NCBI GenBank assembly: GCA_001179505.1
Contig: CDMY01000562.1
Span: 186,001-250,000 of the forward strand
DNA length: 64,000 bases
Direction of reading: 5' to 3'
Source: Vitrella brassicaformis CCMP3155
Lineage: Eukaryota > Protista > Chromerida
This document shows, one piece after another, positions 1 to 9,623 of this stretch. Each line of letters starts with the position of its first letter. The stretch's first letter is position 1. A program made the translations under genes and the position numbers. The notes beneath the pieces are model-generated. The model saw only the letters and a list, made by a program, of their open reading frames with translations, was not told where the DNA came from and did not search any database.

Positions 1-3000
1 CACCAGTGCGGCCGCCCTGAGCTCCTCGTCCAGCAGCCGGAGCACGAGGCTGCACTTGGCCACCCGATTCTGGTCAAGCGTCACCTCCTTGCCGCCCTGC
101 CGCCGCGTGTCGAAGTACATGGCCACCTCTGCTGAGTCCGCAAAACCAGACGGCCCCGTCACCCACCCCAGCGGCTGCCTCTGCTGCACGGCCGCCGCCA
201 GCAGGGGGTTGGGTGAGGGGTTGGTGTCGTCGGCCTGTGGGGATGGGAGGAGTGGCCCCTGGACGTACTGGGCGCCGAGGTCGACCTGGACGGGGGCGGA
301 GAAGAATGCAGGGTCTCTGAGCTGTGCGGACCTGATGCGGCCGCCGGCCTCGCCCCGCGCCTCCAGGATGCCCACCGTGAGGCCGTGCGTCAGCAGCTCG
401 CGCGCGGCCACCAACCCTGATAATCAACCATTCAGGAAATACAGAGGCCGAGTGTGGGTGTGTCGCTCTACCCGCCCCCACCCCCCCACCCGCCCGAGCC
501 AGCGCACCTGCACATCCCGCCCCGATGACGATGGCATCCAGGTCGAAGTTGCCGGCTCCCGCACGCCTCTCGGCGGCCACAGCGGCTGTGCCGCCCGCAT
601 GGCTCTCATCCGTGCGCTGTGCCCTCTCCTGCTGCTGCTTCAGGCGGCAGATGGTCCCAGCCGTGTGGAGGTGCAGCGTCTCGTCGGTGAGCCCGGCGGG
701 GTCGAGTAATTCCGGTCGGAATGCAATCCGGGTGGCGTCACGGAGGCCGTGGATGCGCACGGCTTCGAGGTCGTGTCGCGCCTGGGCCTCCTGGATATCG
801 GTGTAGGGGCCGTAGACGAACTCGTAGCCGTTGCAGACCAGGCGGGCGAAGTACTCGCGCCGCACATTGATGGTGATGCGCCAACCTGACAGACAGACAA
901 GCAGCAAGACGTGACATATATGTGGTTGGTGGTGGTGGGCCGGGCCGTGCTGTGCTGTGCTGTGCCGTGATAGGTCTGCTGGCTGACCTTGTTCAGCGGG
1001 CACCTGTCGCGAGACGATCCCCTGCTCCTCCAGAAAACGACACAGCTCCTCTGGCAGACAGCAGACACCCAAAACGACAGACACCAAGACACGTCCAGCT
1101 GCCCTGCCCACACATGTCCCCCATCCCCTCGCATGCTTGCCCACCGGCAGGCCCAGGCCCAGGTCCTTGACCCATCGCCACCGCAAACTGCGGAGGGGGC
1201 GGCAGCAGGGGCACCTCCATCGGCGGCAAAACCGGCAGCGCTGCAGCAGCGGCAGCACCAGCCTCACCCCCACCACCTGGCGAAGGGCGGTCGCTCATCC
1301 GATCAGCGTCCCCCTCTCCCCGCCCCTCCACGTCGATGTCCATAGTGTCGTCATAGTGGGAGAGGTCGGGTGCCTTGGGGAACCCGGGGCTCTCCTGTGT
1401 GGCCTTGCTGGGTATGCGGCCCGTGTCGCGGAAGTGCCGGTAGCACGCGAAGAGGAAGTCGGCCGTCTGCTGGACCTCATCGGCAGTGCACTGCCGGGGC
1501 GTCTTGCGGGCGAGGTCCTTCTTCGGCGTCGTGTGGGTGCCGTCGGGGTGCTCGTATGCCGGCACCGAAAGCACCAGCTTGCCCCCCTTCTCCTGATACC
1601 ACACACCTGCCACACACACCACACACAGATCCATCCATCCATCCATCCACTCATCAACCAACCCGCTGAGAAAGAGCTCACGTGTGTCGCGCGGGAGGTC
1701 TCCCGGGAGCACCACCCTGCTGTCCGGAAAGCGCCAGAGCCTGAACTCCAGCCTGCCGTCGCCAAAGTCATCGGCATGGCCCTGCCGCACTCGCTCCTTC
1801 ATCTCGGCACTCCAGGCCTGGATGCCCCAGCGCACCCAGCGGGCCTCCGCATCGGCCATGGAGCTGTCTGCACCTGTGTTCTCCGCTGGCTGGCCGGGGG
1901 GGAGTTGCGGCGGCGGCGGCAGTGGCAAGTGCAGGTGCGGGGGCTGCGCAGGTGCCGATTGGGGCATCTTGTTGTCCCACCCTTTCAACACAAGGTTTGG
2001 GTGGTCCTGGGCCCACTCACGGTAAGCTGATGGTTGACCAACACAGACAGACATGGTGAGACAGACACGTGTGGACGATGGATGAGTGAGGCACCTACCG
2101 TCGAAGACCTCCTGGGCGCGGCGTGTGATCTCCACCATCTGCTCGTCAGTGAAGCGCCCATGGGGCGTCCCCGGGCCGAGCGGCAGCCCGTCAAAGAGCT
2201 CCCCGGGCAGTGGCGTCGAGAAGGCCCTGCGAGTGCGATTGCGCACCGGCACCTCCAGATACAACTCCCTGATGCCGCCCGGCTTCTCCTGCACACACAA
2301 CCCTGACACACACACACACAGAGAGAGAGACACCAGAACAAGGAGAAAGGCGTCCTGTGTTGCTCGTGCAGCGTCCGTCGTCTTTGTCTGTCTGTCTCTG
2401 TGTGATTGGATGGCTCGGCTCACGTGCGTCCCGCGGTATATCGCCATCTCTGGGCACGCCCATCCTGAAGAGGTCGGCCTCATCCAGCACTGCGGCACGA
2501 CCGGCGGCAGCCGCGGCGGCGGCAGAGCTGGCATCATCCCTCTCGTCCCCATCGTCATCAGCGGACCCACCACCCCTCCCGGCCTGCCTCTTGCTGCGAC
2601 CCCCCCTGCCGCGGCCCCGCCCGCGGGGCCTGCCTCCCCGACTGGGCCTTCTCACCTTGCTGTCGCCCCGGCTCTCGCTGCTCTGGCTTCGCGTCTGCGC
2701 AGGGCGGCTCTTGGGCCGGCCCTTGGCGCGACTGCCCTTTGGTCGGCCCCGCGGTCGGCCCCTCGGTCGACCAGGACCCCTCTTCCTCTCAACCGACGCC
2801 CCGCTCGCGGACGCCCCGCTCACCAGAGATGGCGGTGGCTCGGGCGCGGCCCCCTCAAGCTGCGGAGGTTCGGGTGGGGGAGGGGGAGGGATCGCTGCTG
2901 GCGGCAGGTCCTGCTGTCCGAACGGCAGAGGTTGGTCCATCATGTTCATGTCGGCACCGCCCCAGTTGTCGTAGCCCATTGGAGGCGGGGGGTGGTGGTG

Positions 3001-4355
3001 GTGGTCGGGGGGGTCCTGGTCCTGGTCTGGAATGTAAGGCGGGAACAGGGGAGGCGGTACTGGGTCGACGACGTCGTTGTTGTCCTGGTGAGGAGGACCG
3101 AATGCGGGCGACAGGTCATCCCCTGGGGGCGCCAGGGGGGGCGGGGGCGGGAAGCTCGGCAGACCCACCCCGCCATCGCCATCGCCACCACCACCATGCT
3201 CACCGTCCGGGAGAGCTTCTTCCTCCTGCTCTTCCACCTGCGGCTCTTCCATCTGTGCCTCGGGGGCTGGTGGCGGGGGCGAAGGGGGACTCTGCTGCTG
3301 CTCTTGTTGCTGTGCTGTCCGCTCCTGCTCTTGCAGCGCCTCGCGTGCGGCCCGTTGTGCGAGGGCGGCCTTCTCCTTCCGTTGTACGGCGGCGGCTTTC
3401 TCTTCCTTGGCCGTTAGGCGCTGGTGGGCCCTGACCTCAGCCACCGCATCCTCTCCAGAATTGCCGTCTCGCTCAGCCAGCCTGCACATAACGACAGACG
3501 GCATGACCAGACTGCATATGCCAGCCAGCATTGGCCGAGGTGGTGGCAAGTTACTTGCGGCTCTTCTTGCGGTTCCGCCTGGCTCTTCTGGGCCCAAAGC
3601 CGTCGTCATCTGCCGCTGCCGAAGTGCCCGACGCCGAGCCGTGACCCTCCCCAGCATGGTCTAGGTCGCGCGCCTCTCTGGCCTCTAAGGCCATGGCCTT
3701 GTCGCGGCGCTCCCTGTACCTGTCGAAGAGGATGTCTGCGGCCTGCTGGACGTCGTCTTTGGTACGGCCGTTGAGTCGGCGTGAGAAGTCCCACTTGGTC
3801 TTGGTGGCCTGGGCAGTCCACACCTCCAGGAACAAGTCGAGCACGCCGTTGTCCTTCTCCTTCAGAAGCAGACCTGATCGACCACACACGACCGATTCAC
3901 TCGTTGAGTGTGTGTGTGTGCGCGTGAGTCTTGGGCTTACGCGAGCGCTTCGGCAGGTCGTCCGGCCTGGGTATCTTGTACCCGAGCACACCGTAGATGG
4001 CATCTCCATGAAGGGGGGCAGCAGCAGCAGCAGCCGCCTCATCTCCCCCTACACCGCCATCACCAGCCGCATTGGCCGCACCACCACCAGCGGCAGCAGC
4101 TGCTGCTGCCGATGCAGAAGCTGAAGCTGATGCAGATGCAGACGCGCTTTCCCCAAGAGGGTTGGGATTGGCCGTCCTCTGCGGTCTGGCATCCTTGCCG
4201 ACACATGCGTCTTCCGCCACAGGGCTGTTGTCCTCATCCGGCTCCTGCACCGGCTTGATGAGCCTCCGCTTCTTGAAGCTCTTCTTGGCCGCCGGCTGGG
4301 GGCGCTCCGGCGCTGGGGCGAAGGGCTTGGGCGGGGACTCGACGTCATTCATCAT
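1..4355 (-). CDS. Multi-exon LSD1/polyamine-oxidase-like FAD amine oxidase with N-terminal AP2-like repeats and AT-hooks; 3' part runs off the left edge
   Basis: Splicing intron 417-507 gives LDAIVIGAGCAG-LVAARELLTHGLTVGILEARGEAGGRIRS...VDLGAQYVQG...NPL, the GxGxxG / LEAR-GGR / DLGA signature of flavin amine oxidases. Upstream GT-AG exons stay in frame back to ATG 4355. Start codon is uncertain. Confidence 0.8.
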
Positions 4356-4805
4356 GCTGCTGCCGTCAAGGAGGGACAGGAGAGGTGTGGCGCACACAGC
4401 ACACAGACAGACACAGCACACATCTGAGATCACTGACTGCAGGTTTCCCTCTCGTCTGCTCGCCTTGGGTGTGAGAGGGTCAGTGCCTTGGATGATGAGC
4501 AAATGCAAGCATCATCATCAGTGACCTCCGTGAGGCAGGCTACTCGAGAAGCATTCCGTGCGATGCATCTACCTCTATGGTAGGAGACGGTCGTCGCAGC
4601 ACAATGAGCTACTCAGATCTAGCACACCTGCTCATTTCGTTTTGCGAGCTTCTTCAGGTAACTGATTTCTGCTCTTCCCAAACAAACTTCACGTTCGTTC
4701 GGTCGCCAGTTCGTTCGTTGGTTCGTTATAACCTCACAACTTTGCCTTGCCTGGCACGGATTTCAGCTTTGGATTTGTTGCTGGTTCCATTCCGTTGCGA
4801 CGGAG

Positions 4806-6017
4806 ATGCATCACAACAGGCGCCGCGAGGTGGAGAACTACACACAGCTGCGGGCCTCGCGAAAGGTGCGGCAACCGCAGACAGACAGACACACGAATGC
4901 CATGCCGCCGACAGGCGGACAGATGCACTCTTCCCGTTGTCTTTGGCTTTCTCCCCTTGTGTGTCGTGTGTGTCATGTTTGTCGTCGCATCTGATCTGAT
5001 TCAGGAGTTGGAGGATGCTTCGCTGGCGTCGCTCCAGAGCAGCATCCGCACCGCCGCCGAGACCACACAAACAGCTGATGCCACCGCTTCCAGACTCAAC
5101 GAACAAACAGGTGGGTCACTCACCCTGGGACTGTTGGTGCCCCGGCACACTTATACACACACGTGACTGTCTGTCTGTCTGTCTGTGGTGCATATCGCAT
5201 CCCTCGTCTGTCCTGACGACCTGCGTGTGTCAGACCAGCTGCACCGTGTCCGCGACACGGCTGATGACATTTCGCACAACCTGGACACCTCCCAGCACAT
5301 CCTCAACGGCATGAAGTCCTGGTGGGGGTCAATGACCAACGCCTTCAAGAAACCACCACAGCGCACGGACTCTCACAGCAACAAAGACCCCAACGCCGCC
5401 AAGAAGGACACCACCGCCACCAGCGGCGGCAGCAGGGACAAAGGGGGAGCAAAGACCGCTTCCCCGAACCCTGCAGCAGCAGCACAGGTGAACGCCTGAA
5501 GGAATCGCGAGATTGTGTCGGGTGGAGATTTTTTGGCTCTGTTTGTTGTCCTGGTGTGTGTGTGTGTGTGTGTGTGCAGGGAGGTCGGCTGTCTGGCGGT
5601 GATGCATCGGGTGTGGGTGGTGGTGGTGGTGGTGGTGGCTCGGGTCCGCCCAAGTCGGCGTTCGACCAGCAGCTTGACCAGGGGCTCGGGCAGCTGGAAA
5701 CACTGGTAGGCAGAGATGGAACGAACGACAAGACAGCACGACGCGAATAATGGCTTGACGTCCCTGTGCTTCTGTTGCAGCTGGAGGGGCTTCATGACCG
5801 GTCCAAAGAGATCAATCGCACGCTGAACAACCAGAACCAAATGGTCAGGCAAACTCCCAAGAGACAGACCTACCCCTCCGAGCGAGAATCTGTTCTGTGT
5901 GCGTCTGTCTGTCTGTCTGTCTGTGGTCAGATTGGTGACATTCACGACCGCGTCGACCGCAACAACGCCAAGATGGACAAACAGCGCAAGGAGATCAAGC
6001 AGATACTCAAGCGATAG
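4806..6017 (+). CDS. SNAP-25/Sec9-like Qbc SNARE with two SNARE helices, multi-exon
   Basis: Spliced product: MHHNRRREVENY..ELEDASLASLQSSIRTAAET..RLNEQTDQLHRVRD..LNGMKSWWG, then FDQQLDQGLGQLETL-LEGLHDRSKEINRTLNNQNQM-IGDIHDRVDRNNAKM..KR*. Two Q-SNARE motifs, no TM helix. Confidence 0.85.
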
Positions 6018-7996: not shown

Positions 7997-8366
7997 CAGC
8001 TAAAGGCGTAGGCGTGTGTCAGCCGCTAAACATGCTTCCTTCGTAGAAAGCGGGGCATCTCGCTGGCCGAGCGATGTGCATGCCGCCCTGCAGGCAACCT
8101 GCGGACACACGCAAGTCAATTGCGTTATCGGAGGGTTTGGGGTCAAGGGTTTGGCGGATCGCGCGAGCTTTTGATGTCTGAGTCCGCGTGAGTGGCCTCG
8201 TCCCCTCCTGTCAGGTCCAGCAGCACATACAGGGCCAACCAGAAGGAGTGGAATGGAAATTCGCCCTTTTCTGTGTGAATGTGTGTATCTGCAGGCGCAA
8301 ACAGTGAAGTGGAGAGATTTCGAGCGCACTGTGGTGCTGCGGTGTCAGTCCTCTATCTGGTATATC

Positions 8367-9623
8367 ATGTTTGCGGCGCCCCTGATTGCATCGCTCCTGA
8401 TTCTCTCGCTCCTCCAGCCATGTTGGCTCTGGCTGCTCCGCCACCCGATGTCCATGATGCAGATCTCGCCAACAAGTGCGCCTCTCCATCAGCAGCACCC
8501 TGCCGCCCTCCCAATCTCCCCTGCCATGACATCATCTGATGAGTCCTTGATGCGCCGATGCGTCACTCTGGCTACCCGAGCTCTCGGCCGGACCCGGCCC
8601 AACCCGCCGGTCGGCTGCGTCATTGTGACCCCCGATGGCCGCATTGTGGGAGAGGGCTACCATCCGAAGGCTGGGGAGCCCCACGCTGAAGTGTTTGCGC
8701 TGAGGCAGGCGGGCGACCTGGCGAGAGGGTCAACAGCGTATGTGTCGCTGGAGCCGTGCAGCCACCACGGCAGGACGCCGCCGTGCTGCGATGCGCTCCT
8801 CGCTGCTGGGGTGGCTCGGGTTGTCGCTGGAGTGGTCGACCCCAACCCACGGGTCAGCGGAGGGGGTCTGGCCAAGCTGAGAGAGCATGGCGTGGAGGTC
8901 ACAGTGATGGATGACGACTCTTGTCGGGAGGTGCTGGCGCCCTTCTTTCGGCGGATCGGCGGCAAGAGCCTGTATGGGAGTGTGATGGGCATCGTGACCG
9001 ACGACGGGTTTGAGGCGATGCTGCCCTGGCCGCTCGAGGCCATGGGGGACGACTGCAAGTGGGAGAGCTCAGAGGTGCCGCTAATGTGGCAGCAGAGAGT
9101 GCAGGCGGACGCTGTGGTCATCGACTGCGATGGGCTCCCAAACACCAGCTCACTCATCGAGTCAGCTGCACGGCTGCCGGCATCTGTTGCCCGTGTCCTT
9201 CTGATAGCCTCGGCGGCCAACCTGCCGACGAGCGACGCACTTCGGCTGCTTGCCAAAGACAGTTCTCTTCTCATCTTTTGCGGCGAAGAACTGCCGAGTG
9301 AGCTATCAAAGGAGGTTGGGGCGAGGGTGTTGCCTGTTGGTGGTGATGTGCCCGTGCAGGAGGTGGCTGACCTGCTGAATGGCGAGGGGATGATGAGTGT
9401 CGCGTGGGCCGTGGGTGACAACCTCCGTGCCGACCTGCTTCAGGGTGGTTTGGTTCAGCGGTTGGTGTTTGTGTTGGATGGAATGGGGTGCAGTGTGTGT
9501 GCGGAGGGGGATGTGTTAGGAGGCTGGGGCCTTGACGCCAATGACGTGTCAAGGAGGCAGGTGGAGCCGTGCTCAGACGGGAGGGAGATAATACATTTGG
9601 ACTTGGCTGACGCTTGTGGCTGA
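8367..9623 (+). CDS. ribD: Riboflavin biosynthesis pyrimidine deaminase (RibD/PyrD) with degenerate reductase-like C-terminus; intronless; signal plus transit-like leader
   Basis: Motifs PNPPVGCVIV, GEGYH, HAEVFAL, YVSLEPCSHHGRTPPCCDAL and DPNPRVSGGG. Hydrophobic leader MFAAPLIASLLILSLLQ followed by a S/P/Q-rich stretch. Confidence 0.93.
   Translation: MFAAPLIASLLILSLLQPCWLWLLRHPMSMMQISPTSAPLHQQHPAALPISPAMTSSDESLMRRCVTLATRALGRTRPNPPVGCVIVTPDGRIVGEGYHPKAGEPHAEVFALRQAGDLARGSTAYVSLEPCSHHGRTPPCCDALLAAGVARVVAGVVDPNPRVSGGGLAKLREHGVEVTVMDDDSCREVLAPFFRRIGGKSLYGSVMGIVTDDGFEAMLPWPLEAMGDDCKWESSEVPLMWQQRVQADAVVIDCDGLPNTSSLIESAARLPASVARVLLIASAANLPTSDALRLLAKDSSLLIFCGEELPSELSKEVGARVLPVGGDVPVQEVADLLNGEGMMSVAWAVGDNLRADLLQGGLVQRLVFVLDGMGCSVCAEGDVLGGWGLDANDVSRRQVEPCSDGREIIHLDLADACG

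Follow-up and report, generated by a model that had tools for sequence, protein, structure and literature searches.

A single expressed gene of the chromerid Vitrella brassicaformis encodes a fusion of DNA-binding-type modules with an amine oxidase. The 5' part of this spliced gene occupies positions 1-4355, on the minus strand, of the 64-kb stretch of genomic DNA analysed here (hereafter the window). The fusion is real and expressed. From N- to C-terminus the predicted protein consists of a low-complexity region with basic clusters resembling nuclear localisation signals (NLS), a first module (M1), a cluster of AT-hooks, three further modules (M2, M3 and M4) and a flavin adenine dinucleotide (FAD) amine oxidase domain with large insertions. 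It is rather probable that this one nuclear gene specifies a protein of ~1830 residues in which the AT-hooks and AP2-type modules tether a divergent FAD amine oxidase to chromatin for the oxidation of amines.

Vitrella is a free-living alga related to the apicomplexan (malaria) parasites, whose gene regulation is dominated by AP2 proteins. The set of ApiAP2 genes has grown greatly in chromerids (PMC4501334). Neither a fusion of AP2 with an amine oxidase nor an ApiAP2 protein carrying such an enzyme domain was described in the papers that literature searches returned.

One transcript and one reading frame

The gene region is GC-rich (62-73%). Within the window it is modelled as nine exons on the minus strand, at positions 4355-3941, 3873-3555, 3481-2424, 2302-2099, 2026-1682, 1606-1145, 1050-988, 885-508 and 416-1. 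The eight introns that separate them are all of the GT-AG type and measure 67-121 nt. Joined together, the exons give 1220 codons without a stop, and the frame continues past the window start. The donor of exon 6, at 1145/1144, keeps the frame and is confirmed by RNA. The start codon lies at 4355-4353, and the NCBI model begins at the second ATG, at window position 4352. Exon 1 (3941-4355, minus strand) comprises the start codon, an Ala/Ser/Gly-rich N-terminus, a cluster of basic residues resembling an NLS (KKSFKKRRLIKP) and, leading into M1, 'DDLPKRS'.

Contigs from several sequencing runs cover this model. Those of X1 and X6 are unspliced and thus derive from DNA, while those of X4 and X5, which belong to different studies, are spliced and thus derive from RNA. 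One RNA contig of 4355 nt (X4 record 9) aligns in the pieces 3480-2423, 2026-1679, 1603-1145, 883-507 and 415-1, and the gaps of 203, 65 and 196 nt within it agree in length with exons 4 and 7 and with the 3' portion of exon 2. The pieces and gaps match the exons, and therefore the end of M1, the AT-hooks, M2, M3, M4 and the start of the oxidase are carried on one transcript. The three contigs of the second study (X5 records 12-14) have the same junctions, so that RNA from two studies links a part of exon 2 to exon 9 in frame. Exon 1 is covered by a further RNA contig (X4 record 10, 3939-4356). The match of this contig, which carries 171 further letters, stops one base before the ATG, so that the AG at 4358-4357 is probably the end of an intron in the 5' untranslated region. 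A C/T variant lies at window position 3719, and at ~3750, a distance of 31 nt, RNA and DNA contigs alike break in what looks like an assembly break and not a transcript end. This variant is present in all four runs, at about half depth in the DNA run X1 and as the majority in the RNA runs X4 and X5. Read on the coding strand, AGG becomes AGA, a synonymous change that keeps an Arg in the helix of M1.

The NCBI annotation of the same genome (assembly GCA_001179505.1, contig CDMY01000562.1) has one gene on the minus strand spanning the entire region, with a product of 1829 residues, and the DNA of the window is identical base for base to this contig over the overlap. The model could be extended on the fetched NCBI locus (L003, whose coordinates are those of the window plus 1748). 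Here exon 9 spans 2164-849 and is followed by an intron of 102 nt, exon 10 (746-634), an intron of 90 nt and exon 11 (543-108), which ends at the donor GAG/GTGGGT. The extended model has 1703 residues without a stop. The RNA contigs of X4 and X5 both extend 1234 nt beyond window position 1; with the 102- and 90-nt introns this extension ends at about L003 323, ~30 nt after the beginning of a CAG repeat. Assembly by k-mers would halt in such a repeat, which fits the model and would account for the shared end of the two contigs. Two other introns were considered and rejected: one of 48 nt after exon 9, which is too short and fits the length of the RNA contig worse, and one of 27 nt within a (TG)n run, which is also too short.

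That two adjacent genes were read as one through an artefact of annotation or assembly is extremely improbable. All junctions between exons 2 and 9, and further ones, are spanned in frame by RNA contigs from two studies, and the DNA agrees with the NCBI contig throughout the overlap. The single spliced open reading frame of the original prediction, which had been drawn from the letters of the DNA, is in this way borne out by spliced RNA and by the single NCBI gene.

Three paralogous modules and a cluster of AT-hooks

Three of the four modules form a family of their own. M1 (aa 131-197; window 3698-3965, minus strand) is split by a phase-1 intron of 67 nt (3940-3874). M2 (aa 590-672; 2007-2448, minus strand) is spread over exons 3, 4 and 5, with a phase-1 intron placed as in M1 and a second intron in the helix. 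M3 (aa 773-842; 1422-1706, minus strand) lies in exons 5 and 6 and again has its phase-1 intron where M1 has it. In all three this intron splits an Arg codon that follows '[LI]P[KR]xx'. The common layout consists of this lead-in, the split Arg codon, 'xxx[KQ]EK', a further pair of strands and a helix, and the helix motif 'D[DE]VQQxADxLFxxYR' occurs in M1 and M3. M1 matches M3 in BLASTP with an E value of 1e-6 (47% identity over the helix) and M2 with 2e-5. A profile built from the three, searched against all six reading frames of the 64-kb window, scores 66-107 bits at these three sites and below 8 bits everywhere else; in the extended protein of 1703 residues it likewise finds no sites besides them. 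Judged by these similarities and by the common intron position, M1-M3 are true paralogues, as the homology proposed for them at the outset would require.

Between M1 and M2 the sequence directly shows a cluster of AT-hooks with an RG-rich run after it (aa 476-541; 2593-2790, minus strand). Its five GRP cores, at aa 482, 486, 490, 499 and 528, include 'PRGRPKGS'. Two of them are RGRP, and four fall within 21 residues, in a stretch that includes 'RGRPRGRPKGS'. The cores are of the AT-hook type, with Gly-Arg-Pro flanked by basic residues, although no match to the short Pfam AT-hook model was reported. When the protein was shuffled 5000 times with its composition kept, only 26 of the shuffles had five or more GRP cores. 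The AT-hook-like motifs noticed earlier in this place are thus real.

A probable divergent AP2 domain next to the oxidase

The fourth module, M4 (aa 949-1013; 713-1009, minus strand), ends in '...YGPYTDIQEAQARHDLEAVRIHG' and is probably a divergent AP2 domain. It was compared with an AP2 hidden Markov model (HMM) made from 38 phage domains, of which three, from the HNH endonucleases of phage Felix O1, are Pfam-confirmed and the other 35 are relatives, most of them flagged as PF00847. Among the Felix O1 HNH genes the first three lack an AP2 domain and the other three have one. M4 scores 7.7 bits against this HMM, a value reached by one of 2000 shuffles. When the 1703 residues of the extended protein were scanned with a sliding window, only windows in M4 scored, the next best staying below 0.3 bits. 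The alignment to the HMM is in the canonical AP2 register, with strand 2, the NG turn, the G-x-aromatic of strand 3, a helix with 'EA' and a closing 'HG'. In a comparison with hhalign, M4 aligns to AP2 with P 0.0019, columns 19-54 to columns 19-54. Language-model features (ESM Atlas) point in the same direction: M4 reaches 0.92 to AP2 clusters, with 162-184 shared features, and AP2 is found in 7 of its 30 nearest clusters.

The match is weak, however, and is not significant over the six frames of the whole window (E 8.2). Exon 8, searched for M4, gave no match to Pfam AP2 (PF00847), even at an E value of 10, and tblastn of M4 against phages gave chance hits only (E 7). An AlphaFold2 model from the single sequence has strands and helix in the order E-E-E-H; with a predicted local distance difference test score (pLDDT) of 43 it is unusable, and the shape search made from it was discarded. 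The AP2-type character claimed for the fourth module is consequently probable, on the strength of the HMM, hhalign and feature scores, though Pfam does not recognise it.

Common descent of M1-M4 is hinted at by their sequences, because M4 shares the position of the phase-1 intron, just ahead of the first strand as in M1-M3, and its lead-in is 'VP'.

The predicted fold of M1

AlphaFold2, run for M1 on the alignment of the three paralogues, gave a model with pLDDT 78.9 and a predicted template modelling score (pTM) of 0.63. Its elements are three strands (residues 2-5, 11-17 and 27-32) and a long helix (38-64). This three-stranded antiparallel sheet with a C-terminal helix, a prediction from three sequences, corresponds to the AP2-integrase fold. 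The concept of a DNA-binding fold shared by AP2 domains and integrases is credited to Balaji et al. (2005) in PMC11742926. M1 is therefore predicted to have a fold of the AP2-integrase type, in agreement with the sheet and helix expected of an AP2-like module.

A shape search with this model in the ESM Atlas returned mainly the N-terminal arm-type DNA-binding domains of tyrosine integrases, with template modelling (TM) scores of 0.65-0.79. With VIA-align, which compared M1 with 48,161 chains, the matches include chain 9g6k_UG of the Toxoplasma mitoribosome (Z 5.5), chain 9i05_Xz (Z 4.5; residues 325-391, the same range as in 9g6k_UG) and the arm domain of the HPI integrase, 3jtz (Z 4.1). Chain Xz of 9I05 is mL153, which the paper depositing that structure lists as 'AP2 containing' (PMC11742926). 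The arm-type domains of tyrosine integrases are thus the best shape matches of M1. M1-M3 differ from them in having no sequence similarity to them, in their eukaryotic context and in the absence of a recombinase domain. Foldseek found no significant match for M1 among viral models. A chromo-like identity was also considered for M1 and rejected, as Foldseek gave only weak chromo-shadow rows (TM 0.28).

The description of the modules as AP2-like therefore stands in part. It holds, probably, for M4, and for M1 it agrees with the predicted three strands and helix. M1-M3 show no AP2 sequence similarity and constitute a repeat family whose link to AP2 comes from the predicted fold and not from sequence searches.

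A very divergent flavin amine oxidase

The start of the flavin amine oxidase occupies window positions 1-541 (minus strand), and the domain continues past the window (L003 1748 to 108 and further). It includes GxGxxG, a Glu at the end of strand 2 and GGR; the FAD-binding start, 'IVIGAGCAG...ILEARGEAGGRI', lies at 541-331. Pfam Amino_oxidase (PF01593) matches it over profile positions 4-49 with 33.5-33.9 bits, above the cut-off of 19.8 bits (E 2.8e-8 to 3.7e-8), and its Atlas features fall among amine oxidase clusters (0.91-0.93) of a generic kind. Further on, 'VVCTFPLGVLK' weakly matches profile positions 246-264 (E 0.11), in the same order as in the profile. The remaining pieces of the oxidase were blank in Pfam and in PDB sequence searches. 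On the profile match, the start of the enzyme is a flavin amine oxidase, as had been proposed, and a very divergent one. PDB sequence matches of this start comprise protoporphyrinogen oxidase (E 0.087), LSD1 (E 0.65) and putrescine oxidase (E 0.84), and this search cannot separate LSD1 from the other two.

The oxidase domain measures ~760 residues (aa ~1071-1829). It contains an insertion of ~170 residues (aa ~1220-1385; L003 ~1250-1750) ahead of 'LTPEQEDHRTWQLAEML', in which no Pfam match was found. Two low-complexity runs also fall inside the predicted domain: a CAG repeat encoding a polyglutamine/histidine run (L003 290-352) and an in-frame (TG)n repeat that would encode a Cys-Val run (L003 182-208).

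Within the insertion, 'KLALYDLSQKYTLGGYTTRWHETLKWIEH' recalls by eye the strand-strand-helix succession of AP2, with no score against the AP2 profile. A fifth AP2 module at this place ('YTLGGYTT...') was accordingly considered and rejected, as it had no score against the AP2 HMM.

Proposed tethering of the oxidase and its alternatives

In the proposed mechanism, the AT-hooks and AP2-type domains would keep the flavin domain bound to DNA or chromatin, where it would oxidise a chromatin-bound amine, which might be a methylated lysine or a polyamine. If catalysis has been lost, the flavin domain would act as a flavin-binding scaffold. We infer that M1-M4 may bind DNA, that the protein may be nuclear and that the oxidase may be active on such a substrate. 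Histone demethylation and sequence-specific targeting may be further properties of the protein.

Several results weigh against the proposed tethering. Pfam AP2 matches none of the four modules, even at an E value of 10, and PHROGs and PDB sequence searches with M4 gave no match. M1-M3 score -1.0 to -1.7 bits against the AP2 HMM, no better than shuffles, and hhalign finds nothing between them and AP2; searches for any family of M1-M3 by Pfam, PHROGs, PDB profile search and language-model features were blank. As to shape, the top VIA-align rows for M1 are LptE-like lipoproteins (Z 6.1-6.6), all its Z values lie below 7, where a match, by the tool's own scale, can be due to a common arrangement, and the rows listed contain no crystal or NMR structure of an AP2/ERF domain, from plants or Plasmodium. 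Foldseek gave no significant match of M1 to the PDB. The modules are nearly uncharged (net charge +3 to -2), which is unusual in domains that contact DNA. Recognition of the oxidase is confined to the ~50 residues at its start and to a single inner motif, where it is weak, and the extended model covers 1703 of the 1829 residues, the ~126 C-terminal ones lying beyond the fetched sequence. In view of such results M1-M3 could instead be protein- or RNA-binding scaffolds that share a common small sheet-helix shape, the AT-hooks and perhaps M4 being the only parts to touch DNA. We doubt this explanation and still give it some weight. The lack of AP2 sequence similarity, the near-neutral charge and the LptE-like proteins at the head of the structural rows all favour it; moreover, ApiAP2 domains can be RNA or protein scaffolds, and act as scaffolds in the Toxoplasma mitoribosome (PMC11742926). 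On the other hand, the Atlas shape matches are mostly DNA-binding integrase arm domains, and M4 agrees with M1-M3 in intron phase, in intron position and in the '[LIV]P' lead-in, which suggests common descent.

The nature of the enzyme leaves room for other readings. A self-targeting H3K4me1/2 demethylase of the LSD1/KDM1 type, whose AP2 domains would recognise a DNA motif and whose oxidase would demethylate nearby nucleosomes, is unlikely. The oxidase is of the same Pfam family as LSD1, and its N-terminus matches LSD1 chains, among others, weakly in the PDB. LSD1-family enzymes carry a SWIRM domain ahead of the oxidase, where M4 sits here. However, SWIRM has no Pfam match on any exon, and M4 precedes GxGxxG by a linker of 57 residues (542-712, minus strand), too short for a SWIRM domain. 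Furthermore, the PDB match to LSD1 is no better than those to protoporphyrinogen and putrescine oxidases, and no family recognises the ~170-residue insertion. This insertion may lie at about the site of the LSD1 Tower, a long helical hairpin, which is a lead in favour of the demethylase; against it, in an alignment by eye, what would be the position of the catalytic lysine (K661 in human LSD1) reads Arg ('GSHTRVVMRF'), likewise a lead only. The label 'LSD1-type' of the original prediction is thus not established. The lack of a SWIRM match is also what would be expected of a PAO/SMOX-like polyamine oxidase put by its DNA-binding parts on DNA, where spermine and spermidine bind. This enzyme would be of the same Pfam family as well, and the nearest language-model clusters are generic amine oxidases and not demethylases. 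Such a chromatin-tethered polyamine oxidase is nevertheless distinctly unlikely: plain polyamine oxidases have ~450-550 residues and neither large insertions nor DNA-binding domains, as against ~760 residues here, and the sequence searches do not separate them from LSD1. Finally, the oxidase might be a catalytically dead or repurposed flavin-binding module and the whole protein a transcription factor or chromatin scaffold, which is doubtful without being far-fetched. The domain is extremely divergent, with one weak motif beyond profile positions 4-49, PDB searches with its middle and later parts were empty, and the polyglutamine and (TG)n-encoded Cys-Val runs interrupt it; judged by eye, the catalytic lysine may also have been replaced by Arg. 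Yet the dinucleotide-binding motif is intact (GxGxxG, Glu, GGR) and the length of the domain fits a complete oxidase with insertions; that the single variant seen, in M1, is synonymous says little.

Relation to known proteins

The tethered amine oxidase proposed here resembles three known systems. With LSD1/KDM1 it shares a PF01593 oxidase with an intact FAD motif, a non-catalytic domain directly upstream and a large insertion in the oxidase; it differs in having an AP2-like domain in place of SWIRM, and its divergence is such that LSD1 does not stand out from other oxidases in PDB sequence searches. With the ApiAP2 factors (PF00847) it has in common multiple AP2-type modules, a long low-complexity protein and AT-hooks. 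In contrast to them, it shows AP2 sequence similarity in M4 alone, and weakly, while M1-M3 form a separate repeat family, and it carries an enzyme domain. PAO/SMOX enzymes belong to the same Pfam family, have the FAD motif and lack SWIRM, whereas the Vitrella oxidase is ~760 residues long and fused to DNA-binding-type modules.

LSD1-family enzymes are usually recruited to their targets by partner proteins. DNA-binding domains fused to an LSD1-like oxidase would, if this is what the gene encodes, constitute a one-protein 'reader plus eraser', and the fusion would allow the evolution of sequence-directed chromatin editing to be tested. It seems possible, although rather unlikely, that there is a chromerid family of chromatin enzymes in which AP2-type readers replace the SWIRM of an LSD1-like oxidase. 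In such a family one polypeptide would find a DNA motif and erase a histone methyl mark, or oxidise a DNA-bound polyamine, without needing a partner transcription factor to bring it there. More generally, the fusion indicates that AP2-type modules have recombined with enzymes in the Vitrella lineage.

Other searches and neighbouring genes

Searches for relatives of the protein brought little. In an exhaustive search of representative proteins with exon 8, the sole match was P0001, a repeat protein that is unrelated and owes its score to six repeats. The 1829-residue NCBI product itself was not returned by this search; either the library does not hold it or the annotated model differs at exon 8. 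No Pfam hit is on record for that product. Word-index searches gave no match with exon 8, nor with the 526-residue read-through open reading frame at 993-2573, for which low-complexity words probably swamped the candidate list. Metagenome scans with exon 9 and with exon 8 gave no match.

Microsatellites of the (TG)n/(CA)n and (GGAT)n types abound in the introns (for example 1607-1681, 2303-2423 and 3874-3940) and appear in a six-frame reading as 'VCVCVC' and 'WMDGWMD'.

Upstream of the fusion gene, a divergent neighbour on the plus strand (4687-5110) contains a GT-AG intron (4864-5002) that RNA confirms. The pieces of its open reading frame are weakly SNARE-like (V-SNARE_C, E 0.055, under the cut-off). 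Further along the plus strand, an intronless gene at 8253-9623 encodes a product of 456 residues that by eye resembles RibD and has a cytidine/deoxycytidylate deaminase domain (PF00383); this product is annotated identically by NCBI and two Logan contigs.

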